64,000 nucleotides of DNA from Macrostomum hystrix (lineage: Eukaryota; Animalia; Platyhelminthes), in assembly GCA_950097015.1 (NCBI GenBank), contig CATNEN010000033.1:5146001-5210000 (forward strand), written 5' to 3'. This document shows, piece by piece, positions 3,001 through 64,000 of the stretch. A program made the position numbers and the translations under genes. Numbering within the stretch: position 1 is the stretch's first letter; every line of letters starts with the position of its first letter. Below the pieces are notes generated by a model. It was not told where the DNA came from and made no database searches. It saw only the letters and a program-made list of their open reading frames with translations.

Positions 3001-6000
3001 CCCTCTCTGTTCCTCACCCTAATCCTCTCTCAGTTCCTCACCCTGATCCCCTCTCAGTTCCTCACCTTAATTCCCTCTCTGTTCCTCACCCTGATCCCCT
3101 CTCTGTTTCTCACCCTGATCCCCTCTCTGTTCCTCTCCCTGATCCCCTCTCTGTTCCTCACCCTAATCCCCTCTAAGTTCCTCACCCTAATCCCCTCTCT
3201 GTTCCTCACCCTAATTCCCTCTCAGGTCCTCTCTCTGATCCCCTCTAAGTTCCTCACCCTAATCCCCTCTCTGTTCCTCACCCTAATTCCCTCTCAGGTC
3301 CTCTCTCTGATCCCCTCTAAGTTCCTCACCCTAATCCCCTCTTTGTTCCTCACCCTAATCCCCTCTCTGTTCCTCTCTCTGATCCCCTCTCTGTTCCTCT
3401 CCCTGATCCCCTCTCTGTTCCTCTCTCTGATCCCCTCTCTGTTTCTCTCCCTGATCCCCTCTCTGTTCCTCTCTCTGATCCCCTCTCTGTTCCTCTCCCT
3501 GATCCCCTCTCTGATCCTCTCTCTGATCCCCTCTCTGTTCCTCTCTCTGATCCCCTCTCTGTTCCTCTCCCTGATCCCCTCTCTGTTCCTCTCCCTGATC
3601 CCCTCTCTGTTCCTCTCTCTGATCCCCTCTCAGTTCCTCTCCCTGATCCCCTCTCTGTTCCTCACCCTAATCCCCTCTCAGTTCATCACCCTGATCCCCT
3701 CACAGTTCCTCACCTTAATTCCCTCTCTGTTCCTCACCCTGATCCCCTCTCTGTTCCTCACCCTAATCCCCTCTCTGTTCCTCTCTCTGATCCCCTCTGT
3801 TCCTCTCCCTGATCCCCTCTCTGTTCCTCTCCCTGATCCCCTCTCTGTTCCTCACCCTAATCCCCTCTCAGTTCCTCTCTCTGATCCCCTCTCAGTTCCT
3901 CACCCTAATCCTCTCTCAGTTCCTCACCCTGATCCCCTCACAGTTCCTCTCTCTGATCCCCTCTCAGTTCCTCACCCTAATCCCCTCTCTGTTCCTCACC
4001 CTGATCCCCTCTCAGTTCCTCACCCTAATCCCCTCTCTGTTCCTCACCCTGATCCCCTCTCAGTTCCTCACCCTAATCCCCTCTCTGTTCCTCACCCTAA
4101 TCCTCTCTCAGTTCCTCACCCTGATCCCCTCTCAGTTCCTCACCTTAATTCCCTCTCTGTTCCTCACCCTGATCCCCTCTCAGTTCCTGACCCTAATCCC
4201 CTCTCTGTTCCTCTCTCTGATCCCCTCTGTTCCTCTCCCTGATCCCCTCTCTTTTCCTCACCCTAATCCCCTCTCTGTTCCTCACCCTGATCCCCTCTCA
4301 GTTCCTCACCTTAATTCCCTCTCTGTTCCTCACCCTGATCCCCTCTCAGTTCCTCACCTTAATCCCCTCTCTGTTCCTCACCCTAATCCTCTCTCAGTTC
4401 CTCACCCTGATCCCCTCTCAGTTCCTCACCTTAATTCCCTCTCTGTTTCTCACCCTGATCCCCTCTCTGTTCCTCACCCTGATCCCCTCTCTGTTCCTCT
4501 CCCTGATCCCCTCTCTGTTCCTCTCCCTGATCCCCTCTCGGTTCCTCTCTCTGATCCCCTCTCTGTTCCTCTCCCTGATCCCCTCTCTGTTCCTCTCCCT
4601 GATCCCCTCTCTGTTCCTCTCTCTGATCCCCTCTCAGTTCCTCTCCCTGATCCCCTCTCTGTTCCTCACCCTAATCCCCTCTCAGTTCATCACCCTGATC
4701 CCCTCACAGTTCCTCACCTTAATTCCCTCTCTGTTCCTCACCCTGATCCCCTCTCTGTTCCTCACCCTAATCCCCTCTCAGTTCCTGACACTAATCCCCT
4801 CTCTGTTCCTCTCTCTGATCCCCTCTGTTCCTCTCCCTGATCCCCTCTCTGTTCCTCTCCCTGATCCCCTCTCTGTTCCTCACCCTAATCCCCTCTCAGT
4901 TCCTCTCTCTGATCCCCTCTCAGTTCCTCACCCTAATCCTCTCTCAGTTCCTCACCCTGATCCCCTCTCAGTTCCTCACCTTAATCCCCTCTCTGTTCCT
5001 CACCCTAATCCTCTCTCAGTTCCTCACCCTGATCCCCTCTCAGTTCCTCACCTTAATTCCCTCTCTGTTCCTCACCCTGATCCCCTCTCTGTTCCTCACC
5101 CTGATCCCCTCTCTGTTCCTCTCCCTGATCCCCTCTCTGTTCCTCACCCTAATCCCCTCTAAGTTCCTCACCCTAATCCCCTCTCTGTTCCTCACCCTAA
5201 TTCCCTCTCAGGTCCTCTCTCTGATCCCCTCTAAGTTCCTCACCCTAATCCCCTCTCTGTTCCTCACCCTAATTCCCTCTCAGGTCCTCTCTCTGATCCC
5301 CTCTCTGTTCCTCTCTCTGATCCCCTCTCTGTTCCTCTCCCTGATCCCCTCTCTGTTCCTCTCCCTGATCCCCTCTCTGTTCCTCTCTCTGATCCCCTCT
5401 CAGTTCCTCTCCCTGATCCCCTCTCTGTTCCTCACCCTAATCCCCTCTCTGTTCCTCACCCTAATTCCCTCTCAGGTCCTCTCTCTGATCCCCTCTAAGT
5501 TCCTCACCCTAATCCCCTCTTTGTTCCTCACCCTAATCCCCTCTCTGTTCCTCTCTCTGATCCCCTCTCTGTTCCTCTCCCTGATCCCCTCTCTGTTCCT
5601 CTCTCTGATCCCCTCTCTGTTCCTCTCCCTGATCCCCTCTCTGTTCCTCTCTCTGATCCCCTCTCTGTTCCTCTCCCTGATCCCCTCTCTGTTCCTCTCT
5701 CTGATCCCCTCTCTGTTCCTCTCTCTGATCCCCTCTCTGTTCCTGTCCCTGATCCCCTCTCTGTTCCTCTCCCTGATCCCCTCTCTGTTCCTCTCTCTGA
5801 TCCCCTCTCAGTTCCTCTCCCTGATCCCCTCTCTGTTCCTCACCCTAATCCCCTCTCAGTTCATCACCCTGATCCCCTCACAGTTCCTCACCTTAATTCC
5901 CTCTCTGTTCCTCACCCTGATCCCCTCTCTGTTCCTCACCTTAATCCCCTCTCAGTTCCTGACCCTAATCCCCTCTCTGTTCCTCTCTCTGATCCCCTCT

Positions 6001-9000: not shown

Positions 9001-12000
9001 CTCTCTGATCCCCTCTCAGTTCCTCTCCCTGATCCCCTCTCTGTTCCTCACCCTAATCCCCTCTCAGTTCATCACCCTGATCCCCTCACAGTTCCTCACC
9101 TTAATTCCCTCTCTGTTCCTCACCCTGATCCCCTCTCTGTTCCTCACCCTAATCCCCTCTCAGTTCCTGACCCTAATCCCCTCTCTGTTCCTCTCTCTGA
9201 TCCCCTCTGTTCCTCTCCCTGATCCCCTCTCTGTTCCTCACCCTAATCCCCTCTCAGTTCCTCTCTCTGATCCCCTCTCAGTTCCTCACCCTAATCCTCT
9301 CTCAGTTCCTCACCCTGATCCCCTCACAGTTCCTCTCTCTGATCCCCTCTCAGTTCCTCACCCTAATCCCCTCTCTGTTCCTCACCCTGATCCCCTCTCA
9401 GTTCCTCACCCTAATCCCCTCTCTGTTCCTCACCCTGATCCCCTCTCAGTTCCTCACCCTAATCCCCTCTCTGTTCCTCACCCTAATCCTCTCTCAGTTC
9501 CTCACCCTGATCCCCTCTCAGTTCCTCACCTTAATTCCCTCTCTGTTCCTCACCCTGATCCCCTCTCAGTTCCTGACCCTAATCCCTTCTCTGTTCTTCT
9601 CTCTTATCCCCTCTGTTCCTCTCCCTGATCCCCTCTCTGTTCCTCACCCTAATCCTCTCTCAGTTCCTCACCCTGATCCCCTCTCAGTTCCTCACCTTAA
9701 TCCCCTCTCTGTTCCTCACCCTAATCCTCTCTCAGTTCCTCACCCTGATCCCCTCTCAGTTCCTCACCTTAATTCCCTCTCTGTTCCTCACCCTGATCCC
9801 CTCTCTGTTTCTCACCCTGATCCCCTCTCTGTTCCTCTCCCTGATCCCCTCTCTGTTCCTCACCCTAATCCCCTCTAAGTTCCTCACCCTAATCCCCTCT
9901 CTGTTCCTCACCCTAATTCCCTCTCAGGTCCTCTCTCTGATCCCCTCTAAGTTCCTCACCCTAATCCCCTCTCTGTTCCTCACCCTAATTCCCTCTCAGG
10001 TCCTCTCTCTGATCCCCTCTAAGTTCCTCACCCTAATCCCCTCTTTGTTCCTCACCCTAATCCCCTCTCTGTTCCTCTCTCTGATCCCCTCTCTGTTCCT
10101 CTCCCTGATCCCCTCTCTGTTCCTCTCTCTGATCCCCTCTCTGTTTCTCTCCCTGATCCCCTCTCTGTTCCTCTCTCTGATCCCCTCTCTGTTCCTCTCC
10201 CTGATCCCCTCTCTGATCCTCTCTCTGATCCCCTCTCTGTTCCTCTCTCTGATCCCCTCTCTGTTCCTCTCCCTGATCCCCTCTCTGTTCCTCTCCCTGA
10301 TCCCCTCTCTGTTCCTCTCTCTGATCCCCTCTCAGTTCCTCTCCCTGATCCCCTCTCTGTTCCTCACCCTAATCCCCTCTCAGTTCATCACCCTGATCCC
10401 CTCACAGTTCCTCACCTTAATTCCCTCTCTGTTCCTCACCCTGATCCCCTCTCTGTTCCTCACCCTAATCCCCTCTCTGTTCCTCTCTCTGATCCCCTCT
10501 GTTCCTCTCCCTGATCCCCTCTCTGTTCCTCTCCCTGATCCCCTCTCTGTTCCTCACCCTAATCCCCTCTCAGTTCCTCTCTCTGATCCCCTCTCAGTTC
10601 CTCACCCTAATCCTCTCTCAGTTCCTCACCCTGATCCCCTCACAGTTCCTCTCTCTGATCCCCTCTCAGTTCCTCACCCTAATCCCCTCTCTGTTCCTCA
10701 CCCTGATCCCCTCTCAGTTCCTCACCCTAATCCCCTCTCTGTTCCTCACCCTGATCCCCTCTCAGTTCCTCACCCTAATCCCCTCTCTGTTCCTCACCCT
10801 AATCCTCTCTCAGTTCCTCACCCTGATCCCCTCTCAGTTCCTCACCTTAATTCCCTCTCTGTTCCTCACCCTGATCCCCTCTCAGTTCCTGACCCTAATC
10901 CCCTCTCTGTTCCTCTCTCTGATCCCTCTGTTCCTCTCCCTGATCCCCTCTCTTTTCCTCACCCTAATCCCCTCTCTGTTCCTCACCCTGATCCCCTCTC
11001 AGTTCCTCACCTTAATTCCCTCTCTGTTCCTCACCCTGATCCCCTCTCAGTTTCCTCACCTTAATCCCCTCTCTGTTCCTCACCCTAATCCTCTCTCAGT
11101 TCCTCACCCTGATCCCCTCTCAGTTCCTCACCTTAATTCCCTCTCTGTTCCTCACCCTGATCCCCTCTCTGTTCCTCACCCTGATCCCCTCTCTGTTCCT
11201 CTCCCTGATCCCCTCTCTGTTCCTCTCCCTGATCCCCTCTCGGTTCCTCTCTCTGATCCCCTCTCTGTTCCTCTCCCTGATCCCCTCTCTGTTCCTCTCC
11301 CTGATCCCCTCTCTGTTCCTCTCTCTGATCCCCTCTCAGTTCCTCTCCCTGATCCCCTCTCTGTTCCTCACCCTAATCCCCTCTCAGTTCATCACCCTGA
11401 TCCCCTCACAGTTCCTCACCTTAATTCCCTCTCTGTTCCTCACCCTGATCCCCTCTCTGTTCCTCACCCTAATCCCCTCTCAGTTCCTGACCCTAATCCC
11501 CTCTCTGTTCCTCTCCCTGATCCCCTCTCTGTTCCTCTCCCTGATCCCCTCTCTGTTCCTCTCTCTGATCCCCTCTCAGTTCCTCTCCCTGATCCCCTCT
11601 CTGTTCCTCACCCTAATCCCCTCTCAGTTCATCACCCTGATCCCCTCACAGTTCCTCACCTTAATTCCCTCTCTGTTCCTCACCCTGATCCCCTCTCTGT
11701 TCCTCTCCCTGATCCCCTCTCTGTTCCTCTCCCTGATCCCCTCTCTGTTCCTCACCCTAATCCCCTCTCAGTTCCTCTCTCTGATCCCCTCTCAGTTCCT
11801 CACCCTAATCCTCTCTCAGTTCCTCACCCTGATCCCCTCACAGTTCCTCTCTCTGATCCCCTCTCAGTTCCTCACCCTAATCCCCTCTCTGTTCCTCACC
11901 CTGATCCCCTCTCAGTTCCTCACCCTAATCCCCTCTCTGTTCCTCACCCTGATCCCCTCTCAGTTCCTCACCCTAATCCCCTCTCTGTTCCTCACCCTAA

Positions 12001-55403: not shown

Positions 55404-58400
55404 ATGCATTTGTACCGGGGTAAGCACAAGAAAAAGTACAACCCCATGGCCTTCCTGGACTGGACCAAGCGGTCCGATGTGAGTTGCCTACTTTCATAGA
55501 AATTCTCGATTCAAATATTTGTCTGAAGTCTAAGATCGATGGTGACATTTTGGTAGATAGTGTCTTGTTTGTTTGCTGGACGGTTAATTGTCGAAATTTA
55601 AATTACGTTTTCCTTGCTAACTTTCTTTTGCAATTTTGCAGTGCTCATCGGTAAGCTAACCGCATGGATTCCGGTCTCAATTGGCTCCTCATATTTTCAC
55701 CTGGTTCCTGTGATAGAGGGCTTCATTTTTCTTCTGGAATTTTACTCCTCGATATCCAGCCAGAGATTAGGTAGCAGCCATCGACATCTAGCTGGAGATT
55801 GGGTAGCAGCCATATATCTCTAGCTGGAGATTTAGTTCCAGCCATAGACATCTAGCTGGAGATAGGGTAGCAGCAATTGACATCTAGCTGGAGATTGGGT
55901 AGCAGCAATTGACATCTAGCTGGAGATTGGGTAGCAGCCATTGACATCTAGCTGGAGATTGTGTTGCAGCCATTGACATCTAGCTGGATATTGTGTTGCA
56001 GCCATTGACATCTAGCTGGAGATTGTGTTGCAGCCATAGACATCTAGCTGGAGATTGGGTAGTAGCCATTGACATCTAGCTGGAGATTGGGTAGCAGCCA
56101 TATATCTCTAGCTGGAGATTTAGTTCCAGCCATAGACATCTAGCTGGAGATTGGGTAGCAGCAATTGACATCTAGCTGGAGATTGGGTAGCAGCCATTGA
56201 CATCTAGCTGGATATTGTGTTGCAGCCATTGACATCTAGCTGGAGATTGTGTTGCAGCCATAGACATCTAGCTGGAGATTGGGTAGTAGCCATTGACATC
56301 TAGCTGGAGATTGGGTAGCAGCCATATATCTCTAGCTGGAGATAGGGTAGCAGCAATTGACATCTAGCTGGAGATTGGGTAGCAGCCATTGACATCTAGC
56401 TGGAGATTGGGTAGTAGCCATAGACATCTAGCTGGAGATTGGGTAGCAGCCATAGACATCTAGCTGGAGATAGGGTAGCAGCAATTGACATCTAGCTGGA
56501 GATAGGGTAGCAGCAATTGACATCTAGCTGGAGATTGGGTAGCAGCCAAAGACATCTAGCTGGAGATTGGGTAGCAGCCATAGACATCTAGCTGGAGATT
56601 GGGTAGTAGCCATCGACATCTAGCTGGAGATTGGGTAGCAGCCATAGACATCTAGCTGGAGATAGGGTAGCAGCAATTGACATCTAGCTGGAGATAGGGT
56701 AGCAGCAATTGACATCTAGCTGGAGATTGTGTTGCAGCCAGAGTTTAAAGCTGTAATATAAAGCTCCTTTCTCTGATTTCTAAGCAGTTGTTAGAACTTA
56801 GCTGTGCATTGTAGCTCACAGAACAATGTTTTTTAATTACCTGGTTTGTAATTCTTGCCTTTAATTTGACTGCATTGTTTTCTGTTATGAAGCATCGAAT
56901 ACACTTCTAATGTTCCAGTTGATTGCAGTTATACTCGTAAATCATAATTAATCACATAAAACGTGATTGCTTCTCTCTATTTTAGTCTAGTGATTAGATT
57001 TAGTATCAGTTTAATTTTATAATTGAATTTATTCTTTCATTTCTTTGCAGGCCTCATTCTTTCAGAAGCCTTCCGTTTATCACGCGCTAATCGTGATATT
57101 CCTGGAATTCTTCGCCTGGGGCCTGCTAACCAATCCCATGATCAACGTGCTGGAGGAGACGTTCCCGTCTCACAAGTTCCTCATGAATGGCCTTATTCAG
57201 GGCGTTAAGGTTGGTATTTTGTTATGTTTGCTGTATGCTCAGGGGACAGTATGGGGCGCTGACTGTGAGTGCTCAGGGGACAGTATGGGGCGCTGACTGT
57301 GAGTGCTCAGGGGACAGTATGGGCGCTGACTGTGAGTGCTCAGGGGACAGTATGGGGCGCTGACTGTGAGTGCTCAGGGGACAGTATGGGCGCTGACTGT
57401 GAGTGCTCAGGGGACAGTATGGGGCGCTGACTGTGAGTGCTCAGGGGACAGTATGGGCACTGACTGTGTGTGCTCAGGGGACAGTATGGGGCGCTGACTG
57501 TGAGTGCTCAGGGGACAGTATGGGGCACTGACTGTGAGTGCTCAGGGGACAGTATGGGCACTGACTGTGTGTGCTCAGGGGACAGTATGGGGCGCTGACT
57601 GTGAATGCTCAGGGGACAGTATGGGCACTGACTGTGAGTGCTCAGGGGACAGTATGGGGCGCTGACTGTGAGTGCTCAGGGGACAGTATGGGGCACTGAC
57701 TGTGAGTGCTCAGGGGACAGTATGGGGCGCTGACTGTGAGTGCTCAGGGGACAGTATGGGGAGCTGACTGTGTGAGTGATCCCAGAATATCCCCCAAAAA
57801 CGTTTCCAGGGCTTTCTGTCCTTCCTGTCGGCTCCCCTAGTTGGCGCACTGTCGGACGTGTTCGGCCGGAAGACCTTCCTGCTGGTGACAGTGTTTTTCA
57901 CCTGCTCCCCGATCCCCTTCATGCACGTCTCCCACTGGTGGTACTTCACCCTCATCACCGTGTCAGGCATGTTCTCCGTCACCTTCTCCGTTGTGTTCGC
58001 CTATGTCTCCGACGTCACTACGGAGGAGGACCGCAGCTGGGCCTACGGCCTGGTCTCGGCCAGCTTCGCTGCCAGCCTCATCACCTCGCCAGCCATCGGT
58101 GCTCATCTCGGCAAGCTCTATAGCGACAATTTTGTTGTGGCCCTGGCTACCTTTGTGGCCCTGCTGGACATCTTCTTCATCTTAACGGTGAGTTCATTGT
58201 GCGAGTTTAGGGTTAAACTATGTTATTTGATCGACTGACTGTTAGATCTGCAGGTAATTATCCAGACTGACTGTTAGATCTGCCGGTAATTATCCAGACT
58301 GACTGTTAGATCTGCCGGTAATTAGCCAGACTGACTCTTAGATCTGCAGCTAATTAGCCATATTACCTATCAGATATGCGGGTAATTGTTCATATTGACA

Positions 58401-60275
58401 ATTTGATCTGCAGCTAATTATCTGTATTGAAAAGCTGCCCGCCCCTCCCGCAGGTGGTGCCCGAGTCCCTATCGGAGAAAAATCGCTGCGTAGCCTGGGG
58501 CTCGCAAATCAGCTGGGCCAAGGCTGATCCATTCTCATCGTTGCGCAAGATGGGCGCCGATCAGCTGATCCTAATGCTCTGCATCACCACATTTCTCAGC
58601 TACCTGCCGGAGGCTGGGGAGTACACCTGCTTCTTTGTCTATCTCCGCCTCATCATGGGCTTCTCAGAGGAGGGCGTGGCCTATTTCATCTGCGTGGTCG
58701 GCATTCTGTCCTGCATAGCCCAGACAGCCGGGCTCAGCCTGCTCATCAAGCACTGCGGGCCCAAGCGGACTATCATGGTCGGCCTAGTCTTCCACATGCT
58801 GCAGATGGGTATCTACGGCTTCTCCTCCCAGACCTTCCTGCTCTGGCTGGCCGGCGGTCTGGCCGCTCTGGGCAGCATCACCTACCCGGCCATCTCCGCC
58901 TTCGTGTCCAACCACGCCGAGCAGGACCAGCAGGGCGTGGCTCAGGGCATCCTGACCGGCATTCGCGGTCTGTGCAACGGCCTGGGCCCGGCTCTGTTTG
59001 GCTTCATCTTCTACGTGTTCGAGGTTGACCTGAACGATGCTCCCAAGCTGGCCACGGCTCCACTGATCCGTGTGCCTCCCGGCGGCCTTACGGGAGCCGC
59101 CAACCGGTCTTTGGCTGTTACGGTTAGTGCCCGGGAGTGTTTTTTCACGCATTAGTTTTTAGTTACTGTCTCAACTTGTGTTATCATGGACATTTTCCTA
59201 CTTAAGCCATGGCCTTCTGTCTCATCTGAGATCGCCTCTACCCTAATTTCTCAGGCGGGATCGGTGGGTGTAACAGCACTCAGCTGGCAGCAAAGCATTC
59301 ACAACTTCAACAAGGCCATCATGCCGGGCCCGCCATTTGCCTTCGGCGCTGTGCTAGTGCTTCTGGCCATACTGGTGTCAGTGCTCATTCCAGACAATCC
59401 GCACTCAAGCATCAACATCAGCGTCAAGCCGGGCGATGGGCACAGGAGAACGCCGAGTTTGGTCATCAATTACCACCGGCTTGGTGGGTTCTGAATTTCC
59501 CCGTCTGCCAAGGATTCTTCGTCTGCCAGGGATTCCCCATCTACCAGGGATTCCTCATCGGCTAGGATTCTCCATCTACCAGAGATTCCCTTTCTGCCAG
59601 GGAGTCCCCGTCTGCCAGGGATTCCCTTTCTGCCAGGGATTCCCTATCGGCTAGGGATTCTCCATCTTCCAGGGAATCCCAGTCTGCCAGGGATTCTGCA
59701 TCTGCCTGAGATTCTCCGCCAGGGATTCTCCATCTGCCTGAGATTCTCCGCCAGGGATTCTCTATCTGCCTGGGATTCTCTATCTGCCTGGGATTCTCCA
59801 TCTGCCTGGGATTCTCCATCTGTATGGGATTCCCCGTCTTCCAGGGAATCCCATCTGCCAGGGAGTCCCCGTCTGCTAGGGATTCACTATCTACCAGGCA
59901 CCTGCCTGGGATTCTCCGCCTGCCTGAAAATCCTAATCCGCCTAGAAGTAGGTTTTACCTTTAATGTTGATTTTAGTTTTCTGAAGAATTTACCAATTCC
60001 CGAATGGTGAAACTCTTCAATTACCATACGAGTATGCCATGTTTTCCTCTGGTTTTCCTACTTGGTCGAGATTCCCATTTGGCAGGATTTCCCTATATAA
60101 GGCGCCATTTCTTATATAAACTATCAGTCATCGCAAACTTTTGACAGCCACCGACGATGAAGACCCGGAACAGCAGGCTTCAGCTGCGGGCACATCGCCA
60201 GCCGCTGCCGGTGGGTCGTCCAGCTCATCCGGCGCTGGTGGCAGCGGCAGCGGCGGAGCAGCTTCAATGAGTTGA
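55404..60275 (+). CDS. MFSD14A: MFSD14/HIAT1-family major facilitator transporter, about 548 aa
   Basis: Exons 55404-55478, (55642-55650 candidate microexon), 57051-57209, 57810-58187, 58454-59122, 59255-59483, 60148-60275; frame-consistent. Motifs PSVYHALIVIFLEFFAWGLLT, FLMNGLIQGVKGFLSFLSAPLVGALSDVFGRK, SYLPEAG, QGILTGIRGLCNGLGPALFG, MPGPPFAFGA. The A versus B paralog name is not resolvable in an invertebrate; first and last exons are less certain. Confidence 0.93.
55770..56740. repeat. 32-bp minisatellite (GACATCTAGCTGGAGATTGGGTAGCAGCCATT), about 30 copies, MFSD14 intron
   Basis: Direct tandem copies with recurring variant blocks. Confidence 0.96.
57236..57775. repeat. 33/34-bp minisatellite (GCTCAGGGGACAGTATGGGGCGCTGACTGTGAGT), about 16 copies, MFSD14 intron
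   Basis: Direct tandem copies filling the intron. Confidence 0.96.
58234..58350. repeat. 32-bp minisatellite (GACTGACTGTTAGATCTGCCGGTAATTATCCA), about 4 copies, MFSD14 intron
   Basis: Direct tandem copies decaying towards the 3' side. Confidence 0.88.
59498..59930. repeat. Degenerate approx. 20-bp repeat (GGGATTCYCCATCTGCCA-like), last MFSD14 intron
   Basis: Repeated GGGATTCTCCATCTGCC blocks. Confidence 0.85.
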
Positions 60276-61826: not shown

Positions 61827-62470
61827 ATGCTCACAGCTATTCATACCTGACAAGCCTATGCTCACAGATATTCACACCTGACAAGCCTATGCTCACAGCT
61901 ATTCACACCTGACAAGCCTATGCTCACAGATATTCACACCTGACAAGCCTATGCTCACAGCTATTCACACCTGACAAGCCTATGCTCACAGATATTCACA
62001 CCTGACAAGCCTATGCTCACAGCTATTTACACCTGACAAGCCTATGCTCACAGATATTCACACCTGACAAGCCTATGCTCACAGCTATTCACACCTGACA
62101 AGCCTATGCTCACAGATATTCACACCTGACAAGCCTATGCTCACAGCTATTCACACCTGACAAGCCTATGCTCACAGATATTCACACCTGACAAGCCTAT
62201 GCTCACAGATATTCACACCTGACAAGCCTATGCTCACAGCTATTCACACCTGACAAGCCTATGCTCACAGATATTCACACCTGACAAGCCTATGCTCACA
62301 GATATTCACGCCTGACAAGCCTATGCTCACAGATATTCACACCTGACAAGCCTATGCTCACAGATATTCACGCCTGACAAGCCTATGCTCACAGATATTC
62401 ACGCCTGACAAGCCTATGCTCACAGATATTCACGCCTGACAAGCCTATGCTTAGAAGATATTCACAGCTG
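61827..62470. repeat. 31-bp minisatellite (ATGCTCACAGMTATTCACACCTGACAAGCCT), about 20 copies
   Basis: Direct tandem copies ending about 40 nt before the SSB-like acceptor. Confidence 0.96.
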
Positions 62471-62511
62471 ACAGTCTGAGGCTCACATCTCTATTAAAAA
62501 CTTTTTTTCAG

Positions 62512-63351
62512 GCGCCTCTTCGCTTTCTCTCTGCGGCCGTCGCCAGTTTCAGCCGCCTCGGTGGCTCCGCCGGCTTCCTTCAGCGCGGGCCTAGGACCGT
62601 CGCCTCATTCAGTTCCGCAGCCGCCGACGAAAGCTACCAACCTGACGGTCAGCAGCAACAGAAGAACACTCGCCGAGTAGCCTTGGACTTCAATGAAGTT
62701 CGCCTAGTCGGTCGAGTCAACAAGGTGCTAGACCTCAGCGCATCCTGGGCCACCTTTCTGCTGTCTACAGAGAGGCGGCTGCGAACCAGAGCTCCGGACG
62801 GGCAGCAGCAGGAGGAGCAGCAGCAGCAGCCTGCTGTGCGTATCGAGCGTGCAGTTCATTTAGTAACCGGGCCCATCGTCAGCGCCAATGAAAGCAGCGA
62901 GTCTGCCGACGCCTCCCAGTATCTGTATCCGGGTAGCCGGCTTGAAGTGGTTGGCCAGCTGGCCTACCGCCCGCTCCGCCGACGTTCGGCCAGCGTAGAA
63001 GCCGCTGAATCCGACGCCGCCGATGATGCCGAGACCAGCCAAGCTGACGGCCCGGTGGCCTTGAAGTTCGAGCCAATCATTCGCATCGCCCGGCTGGTTC
63101 CCCTGGCTCTGACTGACCGCGCCGGCGGCAGGGTCGACGCCTCGTCCGCTCAGTTCGATGCTCAACAGCGCCGGCCGCAGCGTCGGCAACGTCGACAATT
63201 TGAAGACGACAACGTCCGAGGTAACAATCAGGTTGAGGAAGTCAGTCAGGCCGATGACGGCTGGGCCGACGAGAGTCCCAGCGTCAGGCGCCCAGGCGGC
63301 AGGCGGGGCGCCCCGCAGTCGGACTCCTGGGGTGACAGCAAGGACTTATAA
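62512..63351 (+). CDS. Divergent mitochondrial single-stranded DNA-binding protein (SSB OB-fold)-like; no in-frame ATG in the visible exon
   Basis: Frame open from acceptor TTTTTTCAG (62511). N-terminus APLRFLSAAVASFSRLGG...QRGPRTVASFSS looks like a mitochondrial presequence. FNEVRLVGRV, ATFLLST, ASQYLYPGSRLEVVGQLAY and IIRIARLVPL align by eye to SSB strands (compare LNRVHLLGRV, TIFSLAT, AYQYVKKGSRIYLEGKIDY). Confidence 0.72.
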   Translation, partial: APLRFLSAAVASFSRLGGSAGFLQRGPRTVASFSSAAADESYQPDGQQQQKNTRRVALDFNEVRLVGRVNKVLDLSASWATFLLSTERRLRTRAPDGQQQEEQQQQPAVRIERAVHLVTGPIVSANESSESADASQYLYPGSRLEVVGQLAYRPLRRRSASVEAAESDAADDAETSQADGPVALKFEPIIRIARLVPLALTDRAGGRVDASSAQFDAQQRRPQRRQRRQFEDDNVRGNNQVEEVSQADDGWADESPSVRRPGGRRGAPQSDSWGDSKDL

Positions 63352-63841
63352 ATATGAGGCTTTGCATTTGATTCTGCAGCTTCTCTCACTGCCCCATCTA
63401 GCTGATGTGGCCTTGTTTGAATGAGTGTCTATATCTGAGCCACGGCCTGTTTTACCTGGAAAGTAGACACTATCGATACTATTACTGTTTACCAGTTAGG
63501 CCGCTAGAACTGTCACTCCATCATATGCTAGCTAATACCAGTTGTTAGTATTTAAAATATTTTTTGTTAGCACAAATTGTTAAGAACCTTTGTTCTTGGT
63601 GGCGTGTAAGAAGCTGTTTCTGAAAACAAAGTCTTTTTAATTTTGCTACTAATTTTATTGTTTTTTACGGCTTTTTTTATTTGTTTTGAATTATTTAATT
63701 GATTGAAGCTAAAGATTAAACTTGTTTATAGTAGATTAAGCCCAAGAGACTAAAAATTAACTAGCAGCACATTTACTTTACTTCCCTACTTTCAGTAGAC
63801 AGACGCATCGCGTCGTACAAAAAAGAATTTAACAATCAGAC

Positions 63842-64000
63842 ATGCTCTCGACGGCTAGCAATGCAATTGCGCGTCGGCTTCTGCAGCAGCAGCAGCAGCT
63901 GGTGCCGCTCTGGTCGGCCAGCTTGTACACCTGGAATGGAAGGAATACCAACAATGACTCGAACTGGCAGCGATCCGGCGCCGGTGATTCAACTGGCCAG
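63842..64000 (+). CDS. N-terminus of an unidentified protein running off the window; presequence-like start
   Basis: ATG at 63842 after acceptor CTACTTTCAG (63795). MLSTASNAIARRLLQQQQQLVPLW... stays open to the window end with GC-rich codons like neighbouring exons. Confidence 0.5.
   Translation, partial: MLSTASNAIARRLLQQQQQLVPLWSASLYTWNGRNTNNDSNWQRSGAGDSTGQ

Follow-up and report, generated by a model that had tools for sequence, protein, structure and literature searches.

A spliced leader as the probable source of the start codon of a divergent SSB-like gene in the flatworm Macrostomum hystrix

Translation from the AUG at the end of a spliced leader (SL) was reportedly tested experimentally in the schistosome work of Cheng et al. 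2006. According to passages in two sources, all reported flatworm SLs end in an AUG that is able to act as initiator (PMC9851317; PMC12582326). The same passages state that in S. mansoni the leader AUG was in frame in 28% of the trans-spliced mRNAs, and that more than 40 cDNAs of this species need the leader AUG (Cheng et al. 2006, via PMC9851317 and PMC12582326). The initial annotation of the locus described here had taken the initiating capacity of flatworm leaders as established, for which these passages give stated precedent. Within the genus, the M. lignano leader is CGGTCTCTTACTGCGAAGACTCAATTTATTGCATG, with a GTAAG donor next to it in the SL RNA gene (PMC8629364), and an ATG end is also assumed for the leaders assembled for M. 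cliftonense and M. hystrix (PMC10468722).

The locus studied here lies near the end of the window, that is, the whole stretch of 64,000 nucleotides of M. hystrix DNA that was analysed. As in the schistosome case, an SL ending in AUG is joined in frame to an open reading frame (ORF) without a start of its own; unlike in the schistosome case, the host is a free-living macrostomid and not a trematode, and the junction is taken solely from RNA assemblies. The mechanism is already known, and the target gene is a further example of it among flatworms. Our main reading, to which we assign a probability of about 85%, is that the target is a single-exon, SL trans-spliced gene in which the leader AUG supplies the start codon of a 280-residue protein. 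On the protein side, the nearest described systems are mitochondrial single-stranded DNA-binding proteins (SSBP1; 6rup, 3ull, 1s3o) and bacterial SSBs. The target resembles these in a predicted b1-b2-b3-alpha-b4-b5 OB fold of approximately 100 residues (Z approximately 9), and perhaps also in a presequence-like N-terminal extension. It differs from both in a Pfam score below the cut-off, in having no relative outside Macrostomum detectable with HMMER, in its long, Gln-rich or acidic loops and in a C-terminal tail of approximately 75 residues rich in Arg, Gln and Asp.

The target frame opens directly after an acceptor made up of a polypyrimidine tract and CAG (62502–62511, plus strand; AG at 62510–62511), where the sequence reads tttttttcag/GCG CCT CTT CGC with GCG at 62512. 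In the window, ctctattaaaaac stands before this motif, and TTTTTTCAG stands directly 5' of the frame (62512–63348). Translation of 62512–63360 yielded 279 sense codons without a single Met, followed by the stop codon TAA at 63349–63351. With the AUG of the leader counted as codon 1, these are codons 2–280 (APLRF...SKDL), the encoded residues running from APLRFLSAAVASFSRL to GDSKDL, and the M. lignano homolog P0001 has the same APLR start. A phase-0 frame behind a strong acceptor, lacking any in-frame ATG, had been claimed in the initial annotation and was found as described. The nearest in-frame stop on the 5' side is a TAA at 62494–62496, six codons upstream, and the frame therefore has no cis extension in that direction; each of the in-frame ATGs within the 31-bp repeats further upstream is followed by a stop. 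Based on the ORF's own codon-position composition, the chance of a Met-free run of 279 codons is approximately 0.09, so the notable feature is the missing start codon rather than the absence of internal Met. Downstream of the stop codon, the 3' UTR was placed at 63352–63625 from contig ends at 63606 and 63625, which only approximate the mRNA ends.

A run search returned eight runs from two studies, four of which were compared with positions 62440–64000 (study P1: X1 and X2; study P2: X5 and X6). The RNA evidence consisted of assembled Logan contigs, from runs that carry no RNA label on record; such contigs can miss rare cis-spliced isoforms and true 5' ends. The contigs begin at 62511, end at 63606 (X5) or 63625 (X6), and are bounded by zero depth upstream (62440–62492) and in the intergenic gap (63659–63764), and were therefore taken to be transcripts. 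Directly before 62511, non-genomic letters (TGCGAAGACTCAATTTATTGCAT, ACTGCGAAGACTCAATTTATTGCAT or CGAAGACTCAATTTATTGCAT) were present in all four runs and thus in both studies. The ending ...ACTGCGAAGACTCAATTTATTGCAT, together with the G that it has in common with the acceptor, corresponds to the 3' portion of the SL published for Macrostomum, and the loose end of the SL abuts 62511 in X5, X6, X1 and X2. The aligner breaks before 62511 because the leader and the acceptor AG both end in the same G, and the exact cut at 62511/62512 rests on the canonical AG/GT rule, the donor ATG/GTAAG and the acceptor CAG/GCG giving an mRNA that reads ...TTGC ATG GCG CCT. In a model consisting of the SL and 62512–63625, no AUG precedes that of the leader, from which the ORF of 280 residues runs, and all other AUGs are either out of frame (longest ORF 88 aa) or located past the stop. 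The contigs also differed from the window at a few positions (G>A at 62617 in X6 and X2, T>C at 62860 in X2, and an 8-nt deletion at 63832 in the 5' UTR of the neighbouring gene in X6), which likely reflect allelic or strain differences.

The joining of an SL at 62512, proposed in the initial annotation from the genomic letters, was thereby recovered in SL-bearing contigs that join exactly 62511/62512 in all four runs. The same annotation had made its proposal depend on a host that trans-splices and on the lack of a joint to an upstream cis exon; trans-splicing is present in this host, with a leader ending in ATG, and the contigs of the four runs contain no joint from 62512 to any upstream cis exon. 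The main reading holds at the RNA level, at which both the junction and the frame were seen. An upstream exon with an ATG of its own could nevertheless be cis-spliced to the target and provide its start, in which case the SL form would be one isoform among others. Rare variants are dropped from contigs, and flatworm acceptors are often common to cis- and trans-splicing (PMC12582326), but the SL stood at the junction in four out of four runs, another joint in none, and the upstream MFS transporter gene appears to stop near 60273. The 2 kb upstream of the target are AT-rich or occupied by the repeat array and contain no convincing coding exon, as had been claimed for the region before the array. 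We therefore consider a cis-spliced start very improbable.

The outron contains a tandem array of a 31-bp unit (61827–62473; 20.8 copies with 96% match according to TRF), which ends 38 nt before the acceptor and falls outside the mature mRNA, contig depth being zero over 62440–62492. Within the 64-kb window, no copy of the SL RNA gene was found. Further upstream, a degenerate tandem repeat (59500–59900, with units like ctgccagggattc) is situated between the ORF-rich stretches of the MFS transporter gene and its apparent last exon (approximately 60130–60273).

A word search returned a single cluster of three M. lignano proteins (P0001–P0003, 272–274 aa), and the identity between the target and its M. 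lignano homolog was 43% by BLASTP and 46% in a MAFFT alignment. The corresponding loci (L001–L003) are syntenic with the window, having an MFS transporter gene upstream (57000–60273 in the window) and, downstream, a gene for a protein of 196/202 aa followed by a Mito_carr gene. This syntenic homolog with 43–46% identity supports the target frame as coding. All three M. lignano proteins are labelled "partial" by NCBI, and all start with APLRLCTLPVG.... For the Mlig_3_7 annotation, the TBONE pipeline used SL-trimmed reads to define the 5' gene boundaries, and TransDecoder was run afterwards (PMC5730564). With gene starts defined in this way, a "partial" coding sequence beginning at Ala indicates that the M. 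lignano gene, too, is trans-spliced directly before Ala2. Exact-sequence searches with Met placed in front of the M. lignano proteins, aimed at leader-bearing M. lignano transcripts, gave no match. Tandem arrays in the region are species-specific and differently placed: the 31-bp array of the M. hystrix outron is absent from the corresponding M. lignano position, and the arrays of M. lignano lie between the two SSB-like genes (L001 7140–8180) and inside an intron of the neighbouring gene (L001 8600–8950).

The M. lignano assembly itself shows a genomic ATG before Ala2 and no AG acceptor in all three copies, which read tc(c/t)tATG/GCACCC (ATG at 5998–6000 in L001 and at 2998–3000 in L002 and L003). 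Removal of the T from this ATG gives an AG/G acceptor like that of the window. In the M. lignano locus, three annotated trans-splice sites read CATG or TGCATG, the 3' end of the SL, at the place where an AG is needed. At the acceptor of the neighbouring gene, L001 reads TTACAG/TAGAC, and L002 (4997–5002) and L003 (5038–5043) read TGCATG/TAGAC, four consecutive changes that recreate the last six bases of the leader; for the Mito_carr gene in L001, the annotated start comes directly after ttttcATG (10289–10291). The Mlig_3_7 assembly was polished by Pilon with RNA-seq in addition to DNA reads (PMC5730564). Given this polishing and the SL-like letters at two other annotated trans-splice sites, the genomic ATGs of M. 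lignano are probably false, with leader bases imprinted over acceptors that were erased in the process, a reading drawn from the assembled letters. If the ATG were real, the M. lignano ortholog would have its own start, and a one-base switch between an own ATG and a leader ATG would separate the two species. Such an evolutionary switch (CATGG vs. CAGG) was set aside in view of the SL-like CATG/TGCATG at the two other sites and of the RNA-seq polishing. The locus points to a probable RNA-polishing imprint in the Mlig_3_7 reference, by which false genomic ATGs arise at trans-splice acceptors.

With the leader Met in place, the N-terminus (MAPLRFLSAAVASFSRLGGSAGFLQRGPRTVASFSSAAA) is 54% A/S/L/T and carries four Arg, its first acidic residue being D40, and the maximum hydrophobic moment of the segment is 0.53. 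Residues 2–39 of the leader-initiated protein (62512–62625, plus strand) are thereby presequence-like in composition, charge and hydrophobic moment, and by these simple composition measures it is plausible that the N-terminus serves as a mitochondrial presequence. In the M. lignano ortholog, this character is kept while the sequence drifts. These N-terminal features bear on whether the leader AUG might be ignored in favour of a non-AUG or internal start, for instance TTG at 62683, which would yield a shorter protein that is not targeted. A TTG-started ORF of 222 aa does exist mechanically, and near-cognate initiation is known in SL-bearing taxa (PMC9851317). The leader AUG, however, is the first AUG and in frame, and both APLR (residues 2–5) and the presequence-like character are kept in M. 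lignano at an overall identity of just 43–46%, which argues that the N-terminal part is translated. An internal start that bypasses the leader AUG is accordingly regarded as highly unlikely.

The initial annotation had described the gene as SSB-like, a claim that stood for the predicted fold (Z 8.8–9.8) and fell short of sequence thresholds. The sole Pfam match of the target was SSB (PF00436), with an E-value of 0.048 and 14.2 bits vs. a cut-off of 26, and sequence scores at this level place the protein outside the SSB family as delimited by Pfam; the M. lignano protein P0001 had no Pfam match. Searches of PDB sequences (phmmer and profile) detected no relative of the target, and a search of NCBIfam gave no match to it. 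Among 1.84 billion representatives, an exhaustive profile search with HMMER returned P0001 and P0004 and no relative outside Macrostomum; P0004 was rejected as a repeat-derived artefact, being a translated repeat. The target protein was absent from a collection of 5.8 billion proteins. In an Atlas language-model search, the top clusters were eukaryotic SSBs (PF00436) with a score of 0.89, which is below the level at which such a match counts as more than a lead, and two of the three clusters shown were named mitochondrial SSB.

Structure prediction with AF2 gave a pLDDT of 41 for the full-length protein, modelled from a 2-row alignment. The core (62659–63126, plus strand) was modelled from a 6-row alignment (A6) of the target core, its orthologs from M. 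lignano and the paralogs encoded by the neighbouring gene, and was of moderate confidence (pLDDT 68.8, pTM 0.59, 39 residues with values of at least 90). Its strands follow the order b1-b2-b3-short helix-b4-b5, with low confidence in the Gln-rich and acidic loops. The best 50 PDB matches in Foldseek (best E-value 1.4e-6, prob 1.00) were bacterial, apicoplast and mitochondrial SSBs as well as chains from the editing complex of T. brucei (RECC1) and related ones. VIA-align Z-scores to SSB and PriB ranged from 8.8 to 9.8; for human SSBP1 (6rup_A), 105 of 111 residues were aligned with a Z of 9.1, an rmsd of 3.2 and 23% identity. The core model thereby supports a domain with an SSB/PriB-type OB fold and long low-complexity loops, and the target is probably a very divergent SSB-type protein of mitochondria.

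The same comparisons leave some room for an OB protein other than a mitochondrial ssDNA-binding one, such as an RNA-binding or scaffold subunit with an SSB/PriB-like fold, comparable to the OB proteins of the trypanosome editing complex. T. brucei editing-complex chains (9dei) and PriB score level with SSBs, sequence relatives outside Macrostomum were not detected, and the target has low-complexity loops of unusual length. The only Pfam match is SSB, however, the nearest Atlas clusters of both the gene and its paralog are all PF00436 and eukaryotic, UniRef names the paralog an SSB, and the N-terminus of the target is presequence-like. We consider a function outside mitochondrial ssDNA binding unlikely on this evidence.

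The predicted fold also bears on whether the locus encodes a protein. An accidental frame in a transcribed pseudogene or non-coding RNA might be favoured by the GC content of the ORF (64%), which lowers the frequency of stop codons, and by its large low-complexity portions. The 279-codon frame is open in two species, however, its conserved blocks map to the beta-strands of the model and the gaps to the loops, and the transcript was assembled in all four runs, all of which makes an accidental frame extremely improbable.

Under the main reading, the outron of the pre-mRNA, including the 31-bp array, would be removed by trans-splicing, and a 35-nt SL with AUG as its last three bases would be joined at 62511/62512. 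The mature mRNA would then start with SL...UUGC-AUG-GCG-CCU, placing the leader AUG approximately 32 nt from the cap. We infer that translation initiates at this AUG, which would produce M-APLRFLSAAVASFSRL... with an Arg-rich, acid-free N-terminus of the mitochondrial-presequence type, followed by a very divergent OB fold of the bacterial/mitochondrial SSB type and a charged tail; the leader-initiated protein would presumably be imported into mitochondria. Since no start codon exists without trans-splicing, expression of the gene, and with it the N-terminal targeting signal, would depend on the SL.

The gene downstream makes a different use of the leader. Its acceptor AG (63794–63795, plus strand) is immediately followed by TAG (63796–63798), and contigs of X5, X6 and X1 showed the SL joined at 63795/63796, with its loose end before 63795. 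The leader AUG thus meets a stop codon at once and forms a frame of a single codon, and the gene's own ATG follows 46 nt further on at 63842 (MLSTASNAIARRLLQQQ...; 63842–64000 according to a frame check, cut by the end of the window). The motif CAG/TAGAC is kept in M. lignano L001. The M. lignano ortholog of this neighbour, P0005 (196 aa), bears the UniRef name "Single-stranded DNA-binding protein"; its nearest Atlas clusters were all PF00436 and eukaryotic, with a score of 0.86 that amounts to a lead only, and two of the three shown were named mitochondrial SSB. Over the whole OB core, the paralog aligned with the target family in hhalign with a probability of 75% and an E-value of 2.6e-5, and shared 27% identity in A6.

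In M. lignano, adjacent trans-spliced genes on the same strand that are less than 1 kb apart are regarded as an operon (PMC8629364). The two genes in the window receive an SL at 62511 and 63795, respectively, lie on the same strand, and are separated by approximately 170–190 nt between the end of the first mRNA (63606/63625) and the second acceptor, well below 1 kb. The target and its distant SSB-like paralog therefore probably form a two-gene operon, in which the paralog would receive the same SL, close the leader AUG by TAG and use its own ATG. Contig depth was zero at 63659–63764, a value compatible with a polycistronic precursor, as precursors are rare and contigs are not able to exclude one. 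A tentative and rather doubtful extension is that mitochondrial SSB function is provided by two divergent, co-transcribed SSB-fold paralogs whose pairing is conserved, with the SL AUG obligatory as start and generating the targeting peptide in one, and neutralised by TAG in the other; if so, the mitochondrial SSB would possibly be hetero-oligomeric.

On this extended reading, both SL arrangements would be kept between species whose proteins are only approximately 45% identical, which would suggest that the codon directly following the acceptor is under selection. For Macrostomum in general, gene models of this kind are not completable from genomic sequence alone, as the start codon exists only after trans-splicing, and for the target the same holds for the whole N-terminus predicted to direct the protein to the organelle. 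Genes without a start of their own get deposited as "partial", as happened to all three M. lignano copies, or are missed entirely. The two neighbouring genes, with a shared leader and a probable shared operon in an organism amenable to transgenesis, constitute a compact natural pair in which use of the leader AUG may be compared with its bypass.
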